NCBI GenBank assembly: GCA_033442325.1 | Contig: JAWQFM010000026.1 | Coordinates: 185,568-226,188, forward strand | Direction: 5' to 3' | DNA from: Salpingoeca rosetta | Taxonomy: Eukaryota; Protista; Choanoflagellata | DNA length: 40,621 bases | Part shown: one piece after another, positions 8,627 to 30,758 of the stretch | Numbering within the stretch: the first letter of the stretch is position 1 | How the letters are laid out: every line of letters begins with the position of its first letter | The notes under the pieces: model-generated | Seen by the model: the letters and a program-made list of their open reading frames with translations, nothing else | Told to the model about the DNA's origin: nothing | Databases searched by the model: none | Translations under genes and position numbers: made by a program

Positions 8627-10300
8627 GTGTGTGTGTGTGTGTTGTGTTAGTGTGTGAATGGAAAGAAAGAAGGAAACAGGTGGTGGGTGTGAGACGAGCA
8701 AGCAGGGACAGCGTTCAGGAGCATGGTACATACCTGGTGCCTGCGGCATCTCGCCTGTCTTCTTGTACAATCGGTACGACTTGACGCCAAGGGACTGTTT
8801 GGGGGGAGTAACGGAGGGCAGTGTTGTCGGTGATGGCGTGGGTGAGGGGGAAAGCGCCACGCACACGTGCGCTCGGAGGCTGCAAAATGTACGTATATGC
8901 AACACGTAAACGTTCACACAGAGAGAGTGTGTGTGATGATGTAGACACAAGTGAACGAGACGGTACCTTCAGCAGATCCTTCTCTCGAATGTGTTCTGCA
9001 TCTATATCGGCAAGCTCCTGACGCTGTCCGACCAATATGCGCTCAAGGCCAGTGTCAACAAGCTCCTGTGACGGCAAGAAGATGGAGGGAGGGGTTTGGG
9101 GAAGTAGGGAGGTGGGGAAAGCGGTGAGGACAGGCTGCGCATGCAGACCCGCGAGCATACCATGTTTCCCTCATGCCCGCAAGTCTGTGCGTGTGGGCAG
9201 ACATGTAGGCGCACAGAGAAGTGCAGACACACACACACATGTGCACACACACACACACAAGCGCGCGCACACACACACACCAGCACACACACACACACCA
9301 CATACAAGCGCGCACACACACACACCACATACAAGCGCGCACACACACACACATGAACACACAAGAACACACAAGTACACACACACAAGCACACACACAC
9401 CCCACATACAAGAACAGATACGCACCAGCAAGCCACCGCCGTAGCACTTGTTGATTTTGGGTTGTGCGCAGTAGTCGACAGAGCCGTTGTCCTGCAAGTC
9501 CATGGCAATGGCAAGCGTCTCCATGTTGTCCTTGCTGTGTCCAAACTGCGTGAACACGTCCACAGCCTCCTCAACAGACACAGATCCACTTCCTAACAAG
9601 GGGACGCGAACGAGGGGAGGGGAGAGGAGAGAGTGATGGCGTGTTAGCCATTATCAATCTCACAGGGGTGGCTGGGAAGACAGACGATTGCATGCAGAGA
9701 TGCATGCAAGCGGTGGTTTCACACAAACGCCCACCAACCACAAGGACAGCAGAGCAAAAAACACAGGTACTGCTGTGCGTGTTGTGACTGACCAATCTTG
9801 TCGACGCCACGAAGCTCATCAAAGACGCGGGCCACATTCTCCTTGAACCATTCGCGACAGGGCTCTAGCCATTCCACAGACAGAAGGCTCTCGTCTCGTT
9901 TGCGCGACGCTGTGTCATCGATGATCTGCTGCATGCGCAGCTGCAAAACGCAAGCGCATCACGAAGCAAGCGAGGGGCGTGGATAGGACATGAATCAGGG
10001 GGTGAGAGATGCATCGGTGAAGGAAACATGCGGATCATGCACGCAGATGGACACCAGCAGAAACAGGAAACGGCAACAACAACAGTGGGTGTGCTGACCA
10101 GTAGTGGGTCGGCGGAGGAAGCAGACTTCTTTCCCTTCTTTCCCTTCTTCTTTCCCTTCCCTAATCATGCAGGCGTGCAGGAGGTTGAGAAGCAGCAGTG
10201 AGGTGGGGCTGGGGTTGGGGGTTGGGAAAGAAACGCACATGATCGCACGAACGCACGTCTGCACACGAGCACGCGCCTGCGTACCTTTCTTCTTTGGCAT
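8357..10300 (-). CDS. Uncharacterised EF-hand protein with K/G-rich N-terminus and acidic D/G tail (~7 exons)
   Basis: ATG at 10300: MPKKKGKGKKKGKKGKKSASSADPLL|LRMQQ..WFKENVARVFDELRGVDKIGSGSVSVEEAVDVF..AMDLQDNGSVDY..|ELVDTGLERIL.. First EF loop DKIGSGSVSVEE is canonical in length; a second loop is DLQDNGSVDY. Final exon GGGGEDDDLDLDLDDD..GGDD*. 3' exon boundaries are approximate. Confidence 0.65.
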
Positions 10301-10852
10301 GGTGGGGTTGGTGGTGGATTGGCAGAGGGGTAGAAGGAGAGAGAGGGGGTGGGAAGAAGGTAGAAGGCTGGTGGTGGTGGCGGGAACCGGAACGGGGAGA
10401 GAGCAAGAGAAAACACCAACCGAGCAGGGAGGTCTGGAGGTGTGCGCCAGAAAAGGAGAGCAAAGGGAGAACAAAAACGGAAAGGAGAGACAAGAAGGGA
10501 GCAAGCACGCACAAAGGGGAGCAACAGAAGCAAGAAGGCGACACTGCAACAGGCTACGAGCGACGTGTAGTGGAGCGTAGAGTGCAAGAGTCTACATAAG
10601 AGAGTGCAAGACACAGCACAGCCGATGGGCAGTGAAGTCAGTCCAGCCACACTACCTAGGTAAGGAGGGAGCGAGAGCAGGACTGGGAGACTGGGAGACT
10701 GGCAGAAGGAAAGGAGGGAGGAGGGAGGAGAAGGAAAGTGCAAAGAGAGACGGTGGTTGGTGCTATGTGTGGTTGTTGGTGGTGTGGACGTTGAGAGTGA
10801 GTTGAAGCTTTTGTGACTTTGTGACTGGCTTGTGGTAGGTTGTGCTTGTGTG

Positions 10853-10866
10853 GTTTCCAAGGCAAG
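10853..10866. promoter_or_regulatory. RFX X-box-like element (GTTTCCAAGGCAAG) upstream of the EF-hand gene; second copy at 16205-16218
   Basis: Near-palindromic match to GTTNCC-NN-GGNAAC with the last base mismatched. It sits where an A/C-rich, 5'UTR-like sequence begins on the minus strand. Confidence 0.3.
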
Positions 10867-10962
10867 AAGCAAGGCAGGCGATTGGGAGGAACAAGAATGG
10901 GAGGAGCATTCATGTTCGCAAAAAATCGCACGAGAAGCAAGGAAGCGCAAAAGCCTCCAGTC

Positions 10963-11035
10963 GACTCCGTGGCGCAATTGGTAGCGTAATGGACTCCAGT
11001 TCCATGGGTTGCGAGTTCGAGTCTCGTCGGGGTCA
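10963..11035 (+). tRNA. tRNA-Trp (anticodon CCA), intronless
   Basis: Cloverleaf: acceptor GACTCCG/CGGGGTC + A; D arm GCGC-AATTGGTA-GCGT; anticodon stem ATGGA/TCCAT with loop CTCCAGT; T arm GCGAG-TTCGAGT-CTCGT. Confidence 0.95.
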
Positions 11036-11042
11036 CGGTCGA

Positions 11043-11050
11043 TTTTTTTT
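11043..11050 (+). terminator. Pol III oligo-dT terminator of the tRNA-Trp
   Basis: T8 run 7 nt after the tRNA 3' end, followed by a second T6 run; mirrored as A-runs at ~16013-16028 for the second copy. Confidence 0.8.
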
Positions 11051-11385
11051 CCTTTTTTGCGTTTTGCGTTCAGCAGCAAGAACTGCAAGCAAAACAACAA
11101 AGTGCACAAACAACTCACCGACTGCTGTCTCGCACACAACTAACAACAACACAGCGGAAGTGTGCCGACCAACTGAGCAACTGCTGCCTCCCAAGCAAGC
11201 AAGCACCAAAAGAACTCAATCCTGTCTACCACCACCCACAGCACGACAGCACAGCACACTAGCACAACCCGCAAGCGCAGAACACCCGCAGCGGCAACCA
11301 CAAAACTTTATCAAAAGATAACTCTGCTTCTGAGGGCAAACCAAACAGACACAGACACTCACCAACCAACACCAGAATACCAGCC

Positions 11386-11494
11386 ATGACTGCCCTCATT
11401 GATGCTTGCGAAGCAGGAGACCTCGACCGCGTGAAGCGGTTGCTGTTGCTTGCTTGTCTGTGTGATCGCCGCCCTCCAGCAAAGGCAGTTGTCG
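11386..11494 (+). pseudogene. 5' fragment of the ANK-Roco gene (exon 1 remnant with internal micro-inversion)
   Basis: MTALIDACEAGDLDRVKRLL is identical to the start of the gene at 15685(-). Reverse-complementing 11440-11482 restores LLEGGDHTDKQATAK, versus LLEGGDHTDKGAAK in the other copy. No downstream exons are visible. Confidence 0.7.
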
Positions 11495-11976: not shown

Positions 11977-13197
11977 TCACGCAGTGCTACTGTCAGCGTG
12001 ATGCTTCTTTGCCAAGCGGATGAGCTTGTTCGCGCACCCCATCTTCACACCCGTGGCCATCAGCACTTTAACTGTGAGAATGTCCTCCGTGACAAGGTCG
12101 AGCAAGTCTTCAATCGAGTGGATGCCGTGCTCTTCAAGTGCCAATTGCACGTGTTCCAACAGCGAGTGGCGGGTTAGCCACGCCGTCAGCTCTGGCTCAA
12201 ATGGGGAGGAGGAGGAGGAGGGGGAGGAGGGGGATGGAGGGGCGGGAGGTGGTGTAGCAAGGATTGCGGCGGTGGTGGAGGAGGAGGAGGAGGAGGATGA
12301 CTGCAGCGCAGATGAGCAAGAGGGTAAGGTGAGACACGGCGTGGGCACCAAAGCGAAGGCGACAAGGAAAAGGTATGAATGGACATACATTCACGCACAC
12401 ATGCACACACACACACACATGCACACACTATCACACCTGCGTGGATCGCCGTGCAGTTGCTCCTCCATTCTTCGCTTGCTCCTCGCTTCTGGCAGAAACT
12501 ACAACCTGGCGCACTTTCTCTGCAATTTCATGCAGCTGCGACCTGCGGTCCACAGCGGCATCCAGTGCAACCACGGCGTCAATGTCAAACAGGGACAGTA
12601 CCACTTGACGCACGCTCTTGTGCCGCTGTGGCGGTGGCAAGTGTAGCACCTGCGTGAAATACTGATCGAGGGCTGCTGCTGTTTGCTTGCTAACGGCATC
12701 TGGCAGCGTCATCGCCAACTGCTTCATGTTGTCGCGTGAATCGTACTCGCCCGCTTCCGCCCCGCTCATGCCGCTGTCGTTCGCGTTGTGCCACGTGCTG
12801 CCAAGAATCACGGGCACAATGCGATGGAGGCGGATTTTGGCGTGCTGCTGCTCCTTCTCATCTTCTTCATGCGCGCGCTGGTACTCGCGCAGCGCCAGCA
12901 TCGTCATCCACTCCAGCAGCACGTTGTCGCAGTAGTCGCTGTGCTGCAGCTGCCTCATCTGCATGATGGTGGCAGCAGAGACAATGGGGCAGGCCACCAG
13001 GCTCAGCCCAATCGCTGTCATGAACGACAACTTGAAGTTGAGGCCCGTCTCCAGGTTGTTGGCGTCCAGAAACGCAACCAGGTTACGCTGCTCCAAGCGC
13101 GGATGCAGCGCCACCAGCCCACTGCTGGCCCGCTGCCTGTGGTGATCGTGGTGGTGGAGGGAGAAGGGGGATGAGCGGGGTGTTGGCGTGGGACGAT

Positions 13198-13280
<83 letters not shown>

Positions 13281-15685
13281 CGCACACACACACACACACG
13301 CACACACACACACACACGTACACACACACACACACACGTCTCACCGGTAGCTGATGAAGACGTCGTACTTGTCCTGCAGGCCAAGGACTGGCAGGAGGGG
13401 CCTATACTTGGTGATCAGGTCATCGGGTGACAGCAGTTGTTCGTCCACCCACATGTCCTGCTTGCTCTTGTGGTGGTGCAGCACATCCTCGAAGAACAGC
13501 AGCGTCTTGTCGTCGAATGGCAGCAGCAGGTTGCTCTTCAGCTCGGGATAGCGCTCTCTGGCGGCCTCGCTGATCATGGTGGGCAGCATGTGCAGCATGG
13601 CCCGTGGCTGCGCGCTCGTGATCTTCATTTTGATGCCGCCAACAGCCGGCACAAGCTGCAGCTCAAGCTTGGTCGACTCCATGAAGCAGACGGCGTGGGT
13701 GCGGCTCAGCTTGGGCTCCTGTGATGCGCCGTGCTGTGCGTGCGCCATTACATGCGCCAACACCACTGTGAACAGTCCTTCTGGCAGGAACGACGCGTGC
13801 TGTGCGTGCTCAACTTGCACGCTTGCACTTTGCTTGAACTGCTTCAGGCTGAAGGCGACATACGCTGTCTTCTCCTCGTGCCCAACAAATGGGTTGACCT
13901 GCTGTGCTGCTGTCGTGCTCAGCGACACGGATGCCATCGCGCTGTTGTTGTGGCGAATCGTCATCGGCAGAATGGGTGGGACCAGGTACTGCTGCTCTCG
14001 CGCGCGTGTGTCAACACCCTCGCTGCCATCAGCACTATCACCGTGACCGGAGTTGGCACGAATGAGCGCTTTGCGGCTGTCGACCAGCTTGGGTGGGGAA
14101 TACTCAATGCACAGCCCATACTGCATCATCAGGTGCAGGAACGGGTCAACCAAGTTGCTGTCCACGTCGTTCCACAGCACTTCCAGCAGGCGACGGTGCA
14201 GGATGCCGCGGTCAACGAGGTCGTCCCACAGCTGCGCGCCAACGGCCCTCGCCTCGCTATCCCGCACATCACGATGCAGGTCAAAGTTGCGGATGACGCG
14301 CGTCATCATGTCCACAGCCCACTGCGGACTCAGGATCACATAGTCCTCCATGCCAGGCACGCTGTCATAGTACAGGACCATGGAATACAGGTGCAGGAAC
14401 TGAAGGCAGGCTCTCGTCTCCCGACGTGTACGCAGCCCACATGTGCGTGCAATCTTCACCACCTCGTCAAACGTGAGCAGCGGCCGTTTCTCGTCGCGGG
14501 CAATGGCGTTGAGCTTGTCGTAGAGGTGGAGGTATGGCACAGCCACCTCCTGGCTCACGTATTCCTGCCAGTGCTGTGGAGGAGATGGTCTGGCGCAGGT
14601 CCTGAATCACGGGGCCATTGGACTTGGTGTTGTCAACGGGCCAGAACCACAGACCGTGCTTGTCGTTGTGAATGACACCAGGAAAGGCTGGGTTGTGGCG
14701 CAGGCGACTGTAGATGTCGCGTGAGATCTGCTCGTGCTGCTTCCGCTTGCTGACCACATCAGCGAAGGTGCCGACGATGAGGCCGGGTGCACCCTTGGCG
14801 TGGAGGTGAAGGGAGGAGAGCCAGTGCTCCATAAACTCCCACGTCTCTGCCCGCTTGCTCTCGTCTTGGTGCAGCAGGTCCTCCATGGAGAACACCAGCA
14901 GGTACACCGCGTGCCTGGTGTGGGAATGTTTGGGCGGGGTGAGGTGAGGTGAGGAGGGGAGGGGAGGGAGTGGGGTAAGTGGGTGAGGGACAGCAGTGTC
15001 GTTCCCTGGTGCTCCCAACGCACAACAGCATCACGATACAATGCCACATTGTCAAATCAGAGACACAACACACAACGTGTAACGCAGCACAGGATATCCC
15101 CACATCGCACTTGCCTTGTGCACACGCATATTCTTGTCGGTTTGGTTGACGTCTGCGCCCTGTTCAAGCAGAAACCGCACAATCGCCTCATGGCCGTTCT
15201 TGCTCGCCACGTGCAACGGCGTGGCACCCTGAAGCCAACACACCACAGGCACAGAGAGAGAGAGTGTGTGTGTGTGTGTGGGTGTGTGGTGTGTGTGGTG
15301 TGAGAGAGAGAGAGTGTGTGTGTGTGTGTGAGGGAGTGTGTGAAACTAGAGATCAGCAACACACTCACTCACTCACACACACACACACGCGCGCGCGCGC
15401 GCAGTGTCAGCAGCAACACAATAGCGCGTGGAGAGGTTCGAGTCACAGAGGAGAGGTGTCACACGCCTGCGCCGATACCGCTACCAGCACCACCACTGCA
15501 GTACGCACGACAAGCTACCAGACACCCAGATGTCCAACAAATCACAAGGGGACTCTCACAGTTTTGTTTCGCTCGTTAACGTCTGGCTTTGCTGCGCCCT
15601 TGTCCGTGTGATCACCGCCCTCCAGTAGCAACCGCTTCACGCGGTCGAGGTCTCCTGCCTCGCAAGCATCAATGAGGGCAGTCAT
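11977..15685 (-). pseudogene. Roco-family gene, ANK - (partial Roc) - COR - TIR - SAM, carrying inactivating lesions
   Basis: Exon 15685-15560 (MTALIDACEAGDLDRVKRLL..DVNERNKT); 15228-15130 (ANK: GATPLHVASKNGHEAIVRFLLEQGADVNQTDKN); 14914-13345 (Roc C-half HAVYLLVF..HWLSSLHLHAKGAPGLIVGTFAD; COR CLQFLHLYSMVLYY..VILSPQWAVDMMTRVI..FLPEGLF; TIR start YDVFISYR); 13136-12437 (TIR: LVAFLDANNLETG..CDNVLLEW..RIVPVIL); 12300-11977 (SAM-like ELTAWLTRHSL..LEEHGIHSIEDLLDL..GVKMGCANKLIR). Lesions: donor reads AT instead of GT at 15129, Roc P-loop/G3 absent, frameshift at ~14566. Confidence 0.8.
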
Positions 15686-16759
15686 GGCTGGTATTCTGGT
15701 GTTGGTTGGTGAGTGTCTGTGTCTGTTTGGTTTGCCCTCAGAAGCAGAGTTATCTTTTGATAAAGTTTTGTGGTTGCCGCTGCGGGTGTTCTGCGCTTGC
15801 GGGTTGTGCTAGTGTGCTGTGCTGTCGTGCTGTGGGTGGTGGTAGACAGGATTGAGTTCTTTTGGTGCTTGCTTGCTTGGGAGGCAGCAGTTGCTCAGTT
15901 GGTCGGCACACTTCCGCTGTGTTGTTGTTAGTTGTGTGCGAGACAGCAGTCGGTGAGTTGTTTGTGCACTTTGTTGTTTTGCTTGCAGTTCTTGCTGCTG
16001 AACGCAAAACGCAAAAAAGGAAAAAAAATCGACCGTGACCCCGACGAGACTCGAACTCGCAACCCATGGAACTGGAGTCCATTACGCTACCAATTGCGCC
16101 ACGGAGTCGACTGGAGGCTTTTGCGCTTCCTTGCTTCTCGTGCGATTTTTTGCGAACATGAATGCTCCTCCCATTCTTGTTCCTCCCAATCGCCTGCCTT
16201 GCTTCTTGCCTTGGAAACCACACAAGCACAACCTACCACAAGCCAGTCACAAAGTCACAAAAGCTTCAACTCACTCTCAACGTCCACACCACCAACAACC
16301 ACACATAGCACCAACCACCGTCTCTCTTTGCACTCTCCTTCTCCTCCCTCCTCCCTCCTCCCTTCTGCCAGTCTCCCAGTCTCCCAGTCCTGCTCTCGCT
16401 CCCTCCTTACCTAGGTAGTGTGGCTGGACTGACTTCACTGCCCATCGGCTGTGCTGTGTCTTGCACTCTCTTATGTAGACTCTTGCACTCTACTTACTCT
16501 ACGCTCCACTACACGTCGCACATACGTCTACACGTCGCTCGTAGCCTGTTGCAGTGTCGCCTTCTTGCTTCTGTTGCTCCCCTTTGTGCGTGCTTGCTCC
16601 CTTCTTGTCTCTCCTTTCCGTTTTTGCTCTCCTTTTGCTCTCCTTTTCTGGCGCACACCTCCAGACCTCCCTGCTCGGTTGGTATTTTCTCTTGCTCTCT
16701 CCCCGTTCCGGTTCCCGTCACCACCACCAGCCTTCTACCTTCTTCCCACCCCCTCTCTC
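15627..16759 (-). repeat. Right arm of ~1.1-kb inverted duplication
   Basis: Reverse complement of 10339-11445; carries small insertions around 16490-16535 (including a short tandem duplication of ctacacgtcgc) that the left arm lacks. Confidence 0.95.
16036..16108 (-). tRNA. tRNA-Trp (anticodon CCA), second copy
   Basis: Exact reverse complement of 10963-11035. Confidence 0.95.
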
Positions 16760-17114: not shown

Positions 17115-17563
17115 TCAGCTTGGGGTCAGGGCGTCACAGCCTCGCCGAAGAAGGACCGTGTAAGTGTGTTCCATGCCACCCTCCTCACCTAATGCATGCG
17201 AACAAGTGCGTTTGGGCACGTGTGAGACACGGGCAAGATGGACGTTGCGCTGAACATGAAAAGGAAGAACACGGGAGGCAAAAGACCAAAAAGAGCAAAG
17301 ATCTCGACACACACACACACACACGCACGCAAAATACTCACTCTGGACTGTGAATCGGAAGGCAGCCTGGGAGGTTGGCTCGATGGAACGAACAAACGAC
17401 TCCTGTGAGAGCACGACGGCATCAGAGGAGTGGGTCTGCATGACACCCTCGCAGCCAGCCGTCCACTCCTAAATCCAAGCGCAGCCGTATCAGTAGCCGT
17501 CGTGGTTCAAGAAGTGACCTCAAAATAAATTACAGTCAAGTCCCATCACGAGTGCACACACAC

Positions 17564-17614
<51 letters not shown>

Positions 17615-18334
17615 CGCACACACACACACACAGACACACGAACGCACCTCGACGAGGGTGAGGGTTGCATCTGGCCAGAAGGGGCGGGCGAGGATAACGG
17701 CGTCAACGGCTTGTGTGTCGAGTGCGGACGGAGCATCCACAATGAGCGCATATGTCGGCACGTCGAAGCGCCAGGGCGTTGCCGGGACGATGGAGAATGA
17801 GTCAGCAGGGATGGCGAGGGCCTCCACGTTGGCCAGATACGCGTTGCTTGACGTGGGAAGGGCGCACCTGACGAGCATAACACGGAGCCCGTGGATGAAG
17901 ATGGGAACACGTGGATGAGGATCGGTTGTTGAGACCGCGAACAAAACGATTGGAGCAAAGGAATCAAGTTTTGGCACGAACAGAGAGGCGGCAAGACCAA
18001 ACAGAGCCACAAAGAGCAACACACAGACACACACACACACACACACACACAGACAGACACACACACACACACAGACACACACAGACACACGCGTACAGGT
18101 GTCCGTCCCAGCCAGGCTGGCAGGCGCAGGTGGAGGGGGCGGTGCTGAGGGTGCAGTTGGCACGGCCTTGGAAGCAGTAGTCGCTGCACCAGTCGTAGTT
18201 GCTGGTGTAGCACTCATTGAACTCATTCACGCCAAACGCACACACGCACTCCCCTGCAAGCAGTGAACAATGCAACGTGAGCCAACGCAGACAAACACAC
18301 ATATTGCACCAAATGAGCAAACACACACACGCAC

Positions 18335-30648: not shown

Positions 30649-30758
30649 GACCGACCGANNNNNNNNNNNNNNNNNNNNNNNNNNNNNNNNNNNNNNNNNN
30701 NNNNNNNNNNNNNNNNNNNNNNNNNNNNNNNNNNNNNNNNNNNNNNNNNNNNNNNNNN

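Follow-up and report, generated by a model that had tools for sequence, protein, structure and literature searches.

PTSG_08560 of Salpingoeca rosetta, most likely a young pseudogene in a family of repeat-Roc-COR-TIR-SAM proteins

Salpingoeca rosetta encodes a family of proteins built from repeats, a Roc-COR GTPase, a TIR domain and a SAM domain, and one copy of that family, within the 40,621-nucleotide stretch of DNA analysed here (the window), is in pieces that cannot give one protein. The locus is PTSG_08560 (UniProt F2UK16), at about 197,500-201,300 of GL832978.1; the three exons of its public protein are 100%, 99.6% and 100% identical to the window. From the lesions seen in the assembly we judge it to be a disabled family copy, most likely a young pseudogene, with a probability of about 0.7. 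No single frame runs from start to stop through canonical splice sites, because exon 2 is followed by AT where a donor should be, the phases of the remaining exons disagree, and a 2-bp deletion shifts the frame. The first-pass annotation had seen in this locus a candidate ANK-Roc-COR-TIR-SAM receptor. Sequence and Pfam bear out the domain pieces that it listed, with their coordinates and order, all on the minus strand; it passed over the lost exon 2 donor, the shift of frame between Roc and COR, and the lack of any one frame that joins the pieces. The pieces and their surroundings are as follows:

15560-15685, minus strand: exon 1, comprising the ATG and 42 codons, or half an ankyrin repeat; GT donor at 15559
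15130-15228, minus strand: exon 2, encoding a full ankyrin repeat (Pfam Ank, E 1.7e-12)
14973-15129, minus strand: hybrid intron containing the deletion junction and similar in its 5' part to ankyrin introns
14566-14914, minus strand: C-terminal half of Roc, from HAVYLLVF, including the G4-like GTFAD
14565-14568, minus strand: site of the 2-bp deletion; paralogs read CTGGCGCAGGAG, the PTSG_08560 copy reads CTGGCAGGAA
13344-14565, minus strand: COR-A (E 1.6e-19) and COR-B (E 0.039), then TIR strand A (YDVFISYR)
13137-13343, minus strand: phase-2 intron, mostly (GT)n, that interrupts the TIR behind strand A; the splice agrees with the public protein
12437-13136, minus strand: remaining TIR, including the catalytic-position Glu421 of PTSG_08560 (in CDNVLLEW), plus a helical extension
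11977-12300, minus strand: last exon, a Ser/Pro-rich linker and a five-helix SAM domain; stop at 11977-11979
15627-16759, minus strand: right arm of an inverted repeat, containing the upstream region, a tRNA-Trp (16035-16108) and the opening 59 nt of the coding sequence
10339-11444, plus strand: left arm, containing a second upstream region, a tRNA-Trp (10963-11036) and an ATG plus 59 nt

The 5' end of the locus is recognizably that of an ankyrin-headed family member. The product of exon 1 is 71% identical to residues 1-36 of PTSG_13160, a paralog in which Pfam finds Ank in four matched stretches and whose exon 1 is likewise 126 nt long, with the donor GTGAGT; length and phase are as in the PTSG_08560 locus. 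Searched against Pfam, exon 1 of the latter matches Ank at E 0.0029, below the cut-off. One full and one half repeat are all that the locus has by way of ankyrin, and this is no multi-repeat stack. The 25 codons that follow exon 2 were considered as the remnant of a third repeat and rejected, since they have no Pfam match and their DNA aligns to ankyrin introns.

When this DNA is aligned with the PTSG_13160 locus, the donor position of exon 2 (15129-15128) is occupied by AT, GT standing at that point in four ankyrin exons of PTSG_13160, and the sequence beyond it is homologous to ankyrin introns. At 14972, homology to the intron preceding the Roc second-half exon begins. Every exon that should separate ankyrin repeat 2 from the second half of Roc is absent, and with these exons have gone the P-loop and DLGGQ: motifs G1-G3 are missing, and the G domain survives only from HAVYLLVF onward. 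The deletion would thus have run from intron to intron, taking the remaining ankyrin exons and the half of Roc that bears G1-G3. The junction is free of N gaps, the window's single run of Ns being at 30659-30758. No Roc N-terminal exon or P-loop-like ORF was found in 14973-15129, and no other Roco fragments across the whole 40-kb window. Splicing around the gap would not mend matters. Exon 1 (126 nt) and exon 2 (99 nt) both end in phase 0, and the Roc exon requires two preceding bases, which at the PTSG_13160 locus come from an upstream exon ending AA/GTGAGT; the exon phases left after the deletion, 0 and 2, are mismatched.

The 2-bp deletion follows at the border of Roc and COR. It is evident from three-frame translations, from DNA alignments to two paralog loci and from tblastn, in which the segments for Roc and COR overlap by 2 nt in every paralog. 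Beyond it the Roc frame meets a stop at 14467-14469, and COR lies in another frame than Roc instead of directly after it in one polypeptide. Without G1-G3, and frameshifted, the Roc-COR of this copy cannot gate its TIR, and the locus is not a working example of the architecture. Lastly, one codon has been lost from TIR helix A that is present in all of the 25 relatives aligned. The coding chain would therefore be cut at four points (the exon 2 donor, the intron-to-intron deletion, the 2-bp deletion between Roc and COR, and the helix A codon), and translation from the true start codon would end long before COR.

The second half of Roc has no Pfam match when searched alone; its identity to the most similar S. 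rosetta paralogs in that stretch is 78-93%. COR, TIR and SAM together comprise 745 codons without a stop, and PTSG_08560 agrees with its family at all 40 invariant columns of the TIR-SAM alignment, the catalytic Glu among them. Open, conserved frames of this kind fit a recent disabling. They also account for the public model, a protein of 686 aa that the annotators called from an internal Met in COR (ATG at 14381); its residues 1-346 are 100% identical to 14381-13344, and the public annotation has no gene over the ankyrin and Roc exons.

The TIR and SAM assignments were checked by fold as well as by profile, and both hold. The spliced PTSG_08560 protein matches Pfam TIR_2 at E 0.0012, below the Pfam cut-off; in Foldseek its AlphaFold2 TIR model (pLDDT 77) recovers SARM1 at E 1e-3 and, with probability 1.0 and E values of 1e-5 to 1e-4, the TIR domains of RUN1, L6, SNC1, RPS4 and RPP1. 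The family profile, built from 26 TIRs, matches SARM1 at E 7.5e-6 and sets the Glu of LLEW opposite E642. The proposal that this Glu occupies the catalytic position is thereby upheld: it is invariant in 26 relatives and aligns to E1118 of F2UB80, a family member whose TIR is listed as active. The tail of PTSG_08560 gives Pfam matches below the cut-off (SAM_EPH, E 1.3e-3; SAM_2, E 0.022), and SAM_2 is matched by 13 of 22 family tails, with a best E of 3.8e-8. Its AlphaFold2 model has five helices and a pLDDT of 91.5. Foldseek alone returned no significant match between the isolated SAM model and known structures; among the top 30 matches from VIA-align almost all are SAM domains, with top Z scores of 8.1-7.2 (p73, Z 8.1, rmsd 1.8 over 61 residues; EphA5, Z 8.1; tankyrase, Z 7.4; SARM1, Z 7.2).

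Could the 3' part be a working gene in its own right? Such a gene would make a protein of some 686 aa, COR(partial)-TIR-SAM, from an internal start. The protein would act without a GTPase, for instance as a free NADase subunit, or else as a partner or decoy that full-length paralogs take up by way of its SAM and TIR domains. We think this unlikely, yet the case is not empty. The COR, TIR and SAM frames are open and could, over their whole stop-free length, still be in use, which counts against a dead gene; the invariant columns and catalytic Glu are intact, the TIR and SAM models are confident, and the public annotation calls the ORF. Substitutions specific to this lineage number 25 nonsynonymous and 23 synonymous, compared with 102 and 139 summed over six paralogs, and the odds ratio of about 1.5 is a rough estimate that is not significant. 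These counts do not separate neutral decay from constraint, and a pattern that is not clearly neutral suits a gene still at work. On the other side, the annotated gene range is simply the CDS, has no UTR and starts in mid-COR-A (the Pfam match begins at profile position 54), as an ab initio call might rather than a transcript-backed one; the helix A codon is lost from PTSG_08560 alone; and the protein's 90% cluster has no member from transcript-derived sources. A bolder version, in which the surviving fragment would co-assemble through SAM and TIR with full-length sensors as a shared executioner or brake, strikes us as a long shot. If true, such a subunit might be compared to the helper or truncated TIR-only proteins of plant immunity.

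The other alternative blames the draft assembly of 2011: had copies of this multi-copy family been collapsed or joined into a chimera, and 2 bp been miscalled, an intact ankyrin-Roc-COR-TIR-SAM gene would look broken. Two more of the family's loci are interrupted by Ns in this assembly, over 7.3 kb and 4.4 kb, which indicates that the family is hard to assemble, and a near-perfect 1.1-kb inverted repeat, of a pattern that assemblers can create, flanks the gene. We nevertheless consider an assembly error quite improbable. The four lesions are independent and differ in kind, with no N gap where the exons are missing, and the sequence around the deletion junction is ordinary and intron-like, homologous to ankyrin introns on one flank and to the Roc intron on the other. 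The arms of the repeat align over 1134 nt at 96.8% identity; they differ by 7 mismatches and 3 gaps, and a 27-nt flipped piece adjoins one of the repeat's junctions, which are at 11444/11445 and 15626/15627. These features are more in keeping with a genuine rearrangement than with a read pile laid down twice. Sixteen sequencing runs from across studies contain 68-79% of the 31-mers sampled from the stretch, a figure that is not specific to the junctions. The frameshifted Roc ORF of 183 aa, used as a query against 5.8 billion proteins in search of an independent assembly, matched none. A young pseudogene remains our preferred reading. The inverted repeat was also considered as an invertible switch and rejected: flipping the cassette re-creates the same junctions and leaves the coding potential unchanged. 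In the left arm the gene breaks off after the ATG and 59 nt.

The family to which PTSG_08560 belongs is large: the S. rosetta genome has at least 30 paralogs, and two other choanoflagellates have relatives. Intact paralogs exist in S. rosetta with the ankyrin-Roc-COR-TIR-SAM order that the first-pass annotation described; they carry a P-loop, G(Q/E)GRAGKT, and DLGGQ upstream of FLTKY/AVYLLVF, with a low-complexity insert of about 200 residues between P-loop and DLGGQ. PTSG_09991 (900 aa), in which exon 1 is joined to the second half of Roc, looks like a copy with the same truncation, and was dismissed as one because a 7.3-kb N gap lies exactly there. One such member is PTSG_12359 (F2UB80), an intact LRR-ankyrin-Roc-COR-TIR-SAM protein of 1352 aa. 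It and PTSG_08560 are 92% identical in the second half of Roc, 68% in COR and 61% in TIR, share an identical CDNVLLEW motif and both end in a SAM tail; PTSG_12359 has an LRR head, a longer run of ankyrin repeats and both the P-loop and DLGGQ, all of which the frameshifted PTSG_08560 lacks.

According to Table S4 of a 2026 preprint (bioRxiv 10.64898/2026.04.20.719644), the TIR of PTSG_12359 (residues 1034-1255, Glu1118) is active in Escherichia coli and its product is cADPR. The text of the preprint adds that the activity of active TIRs depended on the catalytic Glu in all cases, and Roc and COR are among the domains in a figure legend; F2UK16 does not appear among the rows listed in its tables. 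The accessions PTSG_08560, PTSG_12359, F2UK16 and F2UB80 do not occur in the searchable main texts of papers. The notion that the architecture had escaped description must be given up all the same: these proteins are already in GenBank and UniProt, and with so many paralogs, relatives in two further choanoflagellates and one family TIR put to the test in the preprint, ankyrin-Roc-COR-TIR-SAM is not new.

Intact members probably work as a relay. Their repeats would sense something, the Roc-COR GTPase would switch the oligomeric state, the SAM and TIR domains would cluster, and the clustered TIR would cleave NAD+ and make cADPR; the TIR step alone has been put to experimental test. SARM1, an NAD+ hydrolase of the form ARM-SAM-SAM-TIR, is the best match among solved structures to the family TIR profile, and its TIR NADase is activated by SAM-driven assembly. 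Its SAM domains precede the TIR, whereas in the family the SAM follows it; inhibition comes from its ARM domain, and it contains no GTPase, where the family has Roc-COR; and it lacks the helical extension of about 100 residues that is predicted for the PTSG_08560 TIR. DAPK1 (kinase-ankyrin-Roc-COR-death domain), LRRK2 and the Chlorobium tepidum Roco protein all have repeats and then the Roc-COR tandem, as the family does, with the differences that the family's output is TIR-SAM and not a kinase or death domain, that its Roc carries the low-complexity insert, and that PTSG_08560 has only half a Roc. PMC5714945 describes a nucleotide-dependent monomer-dimer cycle for the bacterial homologue. By structure, the TIR model is matched best by plant TIR-NB-LRR proteins (RUN1, L6, RPP1, Roq1), with a Foldseek E of 1e-5 and a probability of 1.0. 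These proteins share the logic of sensor repeats, nucleotide switch and enzymatic TIR, but their switch is a STAND ATPase instead of a Roc-COR GTPase, their domain order is different and they have no SAM.

In this family, then, a Roco GTPase occupies the place that STAND ATPases fill in the NLRs of plants and animals, and is coupled to an enzymatic TIR. Choanoflagellates are the closest living relatives of animals, and they have dozens of these receptor-like Roco-TIR genes. PTSG_08560 itself adds little beyond a view of how the family turns over, its members being born and lost by rearrangement, deletion and frameshift, and a warning about the public model: as the fragment of a broken gene, that model ought not to be listed as a COR-TIR-SAM architecture in its own right. 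Over the 3' part (second half of Roc, COR and TIR) its closest relatives are PTSG_10661, PTSG_05418, PTSG_12865, PTSG_10437 and related paralogs, at 85-92% protein identity. Paralogs of the PTSG_10661 type begin with a different first exon (MSGGEKRA..., an LRR head), whereas exon 1 of PTSG_08560 matches that of ankyrin-headed PTSG_13160, and from this comparison of sequences the copy may be a mosaic.

By sequence reading, and by scanning its pieces against Pfam, the locus lies on the minus strand and carries the domains, in the order and at the coordinates, that the first-pass annotation had set out: ankyrin, Roc, COR, TIR and SAM, at 11977-15685.

Exons and domains of the locus, in window coordinates
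15685..15560, minus strand: exon 1; ATG, 42 codons and a GT donor; half an ankyrin repeat
15228..15130, minus strand: exon 2; one ankyrin repeat (Pfam Ank, E 1.7e-12)
14914..14566, minus strand: second half of Roc; 78-93% identity to the closest S. rosetta paralogs
to 13344, minus strand: COR, its end forming TIR strand A (YDVFISYR); COR-A E 1.6e-19, COR-B E 0.039
13343..13137, minus strand: (GT)n intron, from the sequence
13136..12437, minus strand: remainder of the TIR, by fold and profile evidence
12300..11980, minus strand: Ser/Pro-rich linker and SAM-like domain (SAM_EPH, E 1.3e-3)
11977-11979, minus strand: stop codon, after the SAM-like domain

The second half of Roc, scanned alone, has no Pfam match. 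The intron within the TIR holds about 180 nt of near-pure (GT)n, and long (GT)n/(CA)n microsatellites are abundant in the introns of the window (e.g. 9200-9430 and 17540-17650); the numerous spurious ORFs listed with CVCVCV or HTHTHT sequence are products of such tracts. A 100-nt run of Ns, an assembly gap, lies at 30659-30758, within a different gene.

Most likely, this locus is a pseudogene of recent origin, belonging to a family already known. Frame translations place Roc and COR in different reading frames, and two bases are missing at about 14566 when the window DNA is aligned with two paralogous loci. In tblastn, each paralog gives two segments that abut in the protein, residue next to residue, but share 2 nt of the window; read past the frameshift, the Roc frame meets a stop at 14467-14469. 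Intact paralogs have both the P-loop, G(Q/E)GRAGKT, and the G3 motif, DLGGQ, ahead of ..FLTKY/AVYLLVF. The Roc exon of the window begins at HAVYLLVF, and nothing similar to the missing part was found anywhere in the 40 kb. Past exon 2, the sequence is alignable with introns of the PTSG_13160 locus (L004), those downstream of ankyrin exons with a single repeat, and from 14972 it is homologous to the intron that precedes this Roc exon in the paralogs; the deletion thus spans from intron to intron, with no N gap at the junction. In the alignment with the PTSG_13160 locus, the exon 2 donor reads AT, versus GT after four paralogous ankyrin exons. The first two exons end in phase 0, and the Roc exon requires two preceding bases (at L004, the upstream exon ends AA/GTGAGT); a forced splice from exon 2 to the Roc exon would still be out of frame. 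Across 26 aligned TIR-SAM regions, only the window copy is one residue short in TIR helix A.

Some caution is called for here because two other family loci in the assembly have N gaps of several kb inside the gene: 7.3 kb at PTSG_09991 (L006:5342-12667) and 4.4 kb at PTSG_13160 (L004:5809-10167). The 900-aa model of PTSG_09991, which joins its first exon to the second half of Roc, we reject as an annotation artefact on account of that gap. Counts of family architectures from the 2011 assembly are unreliable.

When codon changes unique to each copy were counted against six paralogous loci, the window copy had 25 nonsynonymous and 23 synonymous, and the six other copies, summed, 102 and 139. The excess is small and, by rough estimate, not significant. 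Either the copy was disabled recently, or gene conversion has kept it similar to the others, or its 3' part is still used.

The gene is flanked by an inverted repeat, whose arms align over 1134 nt at 96.8%, and at 100% near the gene.

Arms of the inverted repeat, in window coordinates
10339-11444: left arm; tRNA-Trp, upstream region, ATG and first 59 nt of exon 1
15627-16759: right arm; tRNA-Trp, upstream region, ATG and first 59 nt of exon 1

Of the two, only the right one runs on into the gene. At 11453-11479, beside the left junction, lies an inverted copy of the 27 nt (15599-15625) that follow the right arm, an arrangement that suggests a fold-back event, or inversion in place with duplication of the breakpoint, either of which would fit better than an assembler artefact.

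In the TIR-SAM alignment of the family 40 columns are invariant, and the window copy conforms to every one, CDNVLLEW included. The best solved relative of the family profile is SARM1 (E 7.5e-6), and the profile sets the Glu of LLEW opposite SARM1 E642, where the first-pass annotation had placed it. An AlphaFold2 model of residues 333-686 (pLDDT 77) matches plant TIR domains (E 1e-5) and SARM1 (E 1e-3) in Foldseek. The tail, modeled in isolation, forms five helices (pLDDT 91.5); Foldseek returned no significant match for it, and in an exhaustive VIA-align search nearly all of the top 30 were SAM domains (Z 8.1 for p73 and EphA5, 8.0 for Caskin2, 7.4 for tankyrase and 7.2 for the SARM1 SAM). Pfam SAM_2 matches 13 of 22 paralog tails. 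The first-pass annotation is right on the domains and on the catalytic Glu.

With the COR piece as query, the top HMMER matches among 1.84 billion representative proteins were from Salpingoeca rosetta, and a word search that started from a paralog brought up about 30 Roco proteins of this species. One, PTSG_08560 (P0174; XP_004990353.1; UniProt F2UK16; 686 aa; contig GL832978.1 of assembly GCA_000188695.1), matches the window in three exons: 100% (14381..13344), 99.6% (13141..12437) and 100% (12303..11980). Its Pfam COR-A match starts at profile position 54; the public annotation has no gene over the ankyrin exons or the Roc half, and so the model begins at an internal Met within COR-A.

In intact members, LRRs, ankyrin repeats or both go together with Roc, COR-A/B, TIR and SAM. 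A Salpingoeca infusionum relative is Rab-Roc-COR-TIR-SAM, Barroeca monosierra has relatives, and environmental data contain Roc-COR-TIR proteins as well. The architecture is not new, contrary to the first-pass annotation. That choanoflagellates have ankyrin repeats linked to intracellular TIR domains had been noted earlier by Richter et al. (bioRxiv 10.1101/211789). In a preprint in which 154 eukaryotic TIRs were expressed in E. coli (bioRxiv 10.64898/2026.04.20.719644), Table S4 entry 33 is F2UB80 (residues 1034-1255, with 1118 as the catalytic residue: active, cADPR yes), activity is reported to depend in every case on the catalytic Glu, S. rosetta is named, and the Figure 3 legend includes Roc and COR among the drawn domains. 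F2UB80 is the paralog PTSG_12359 (P0159), and its residue 1118 is the Glu of LLEW. GTP gating and SAM polymerization are putative for every member of the family.

Several members (P0161, P0164, P0173 and P0175) have CaaX-like C-termini in the TIR-SAM alignment—CCLLM, CCALM, VCVIA and RCTIC—that suggest lipid anchoring; the C-terminus of the window copy has no such motif. The Roc domains of the family carry a low-complexity, Ser/Gln/Pro-rich insert of about 200 residues that separates the P-loop from the DLGGQ switch II motif (P0160 447-655; P0167 226-427), which is unusual among Roc domains. In the close paralog PTSG_02681 (P0002; L002:10001-15927), Roc-COR is followed not by TIR-SAM but by a PNP_UDP_1 nucleoside-phosphorylase domain (Pfam E 5.3e-6, residues 1270-1492), and so the family may swap effector domains; PNP_UDP_1 is found, too, at the head of fungal NLR-like proteins.
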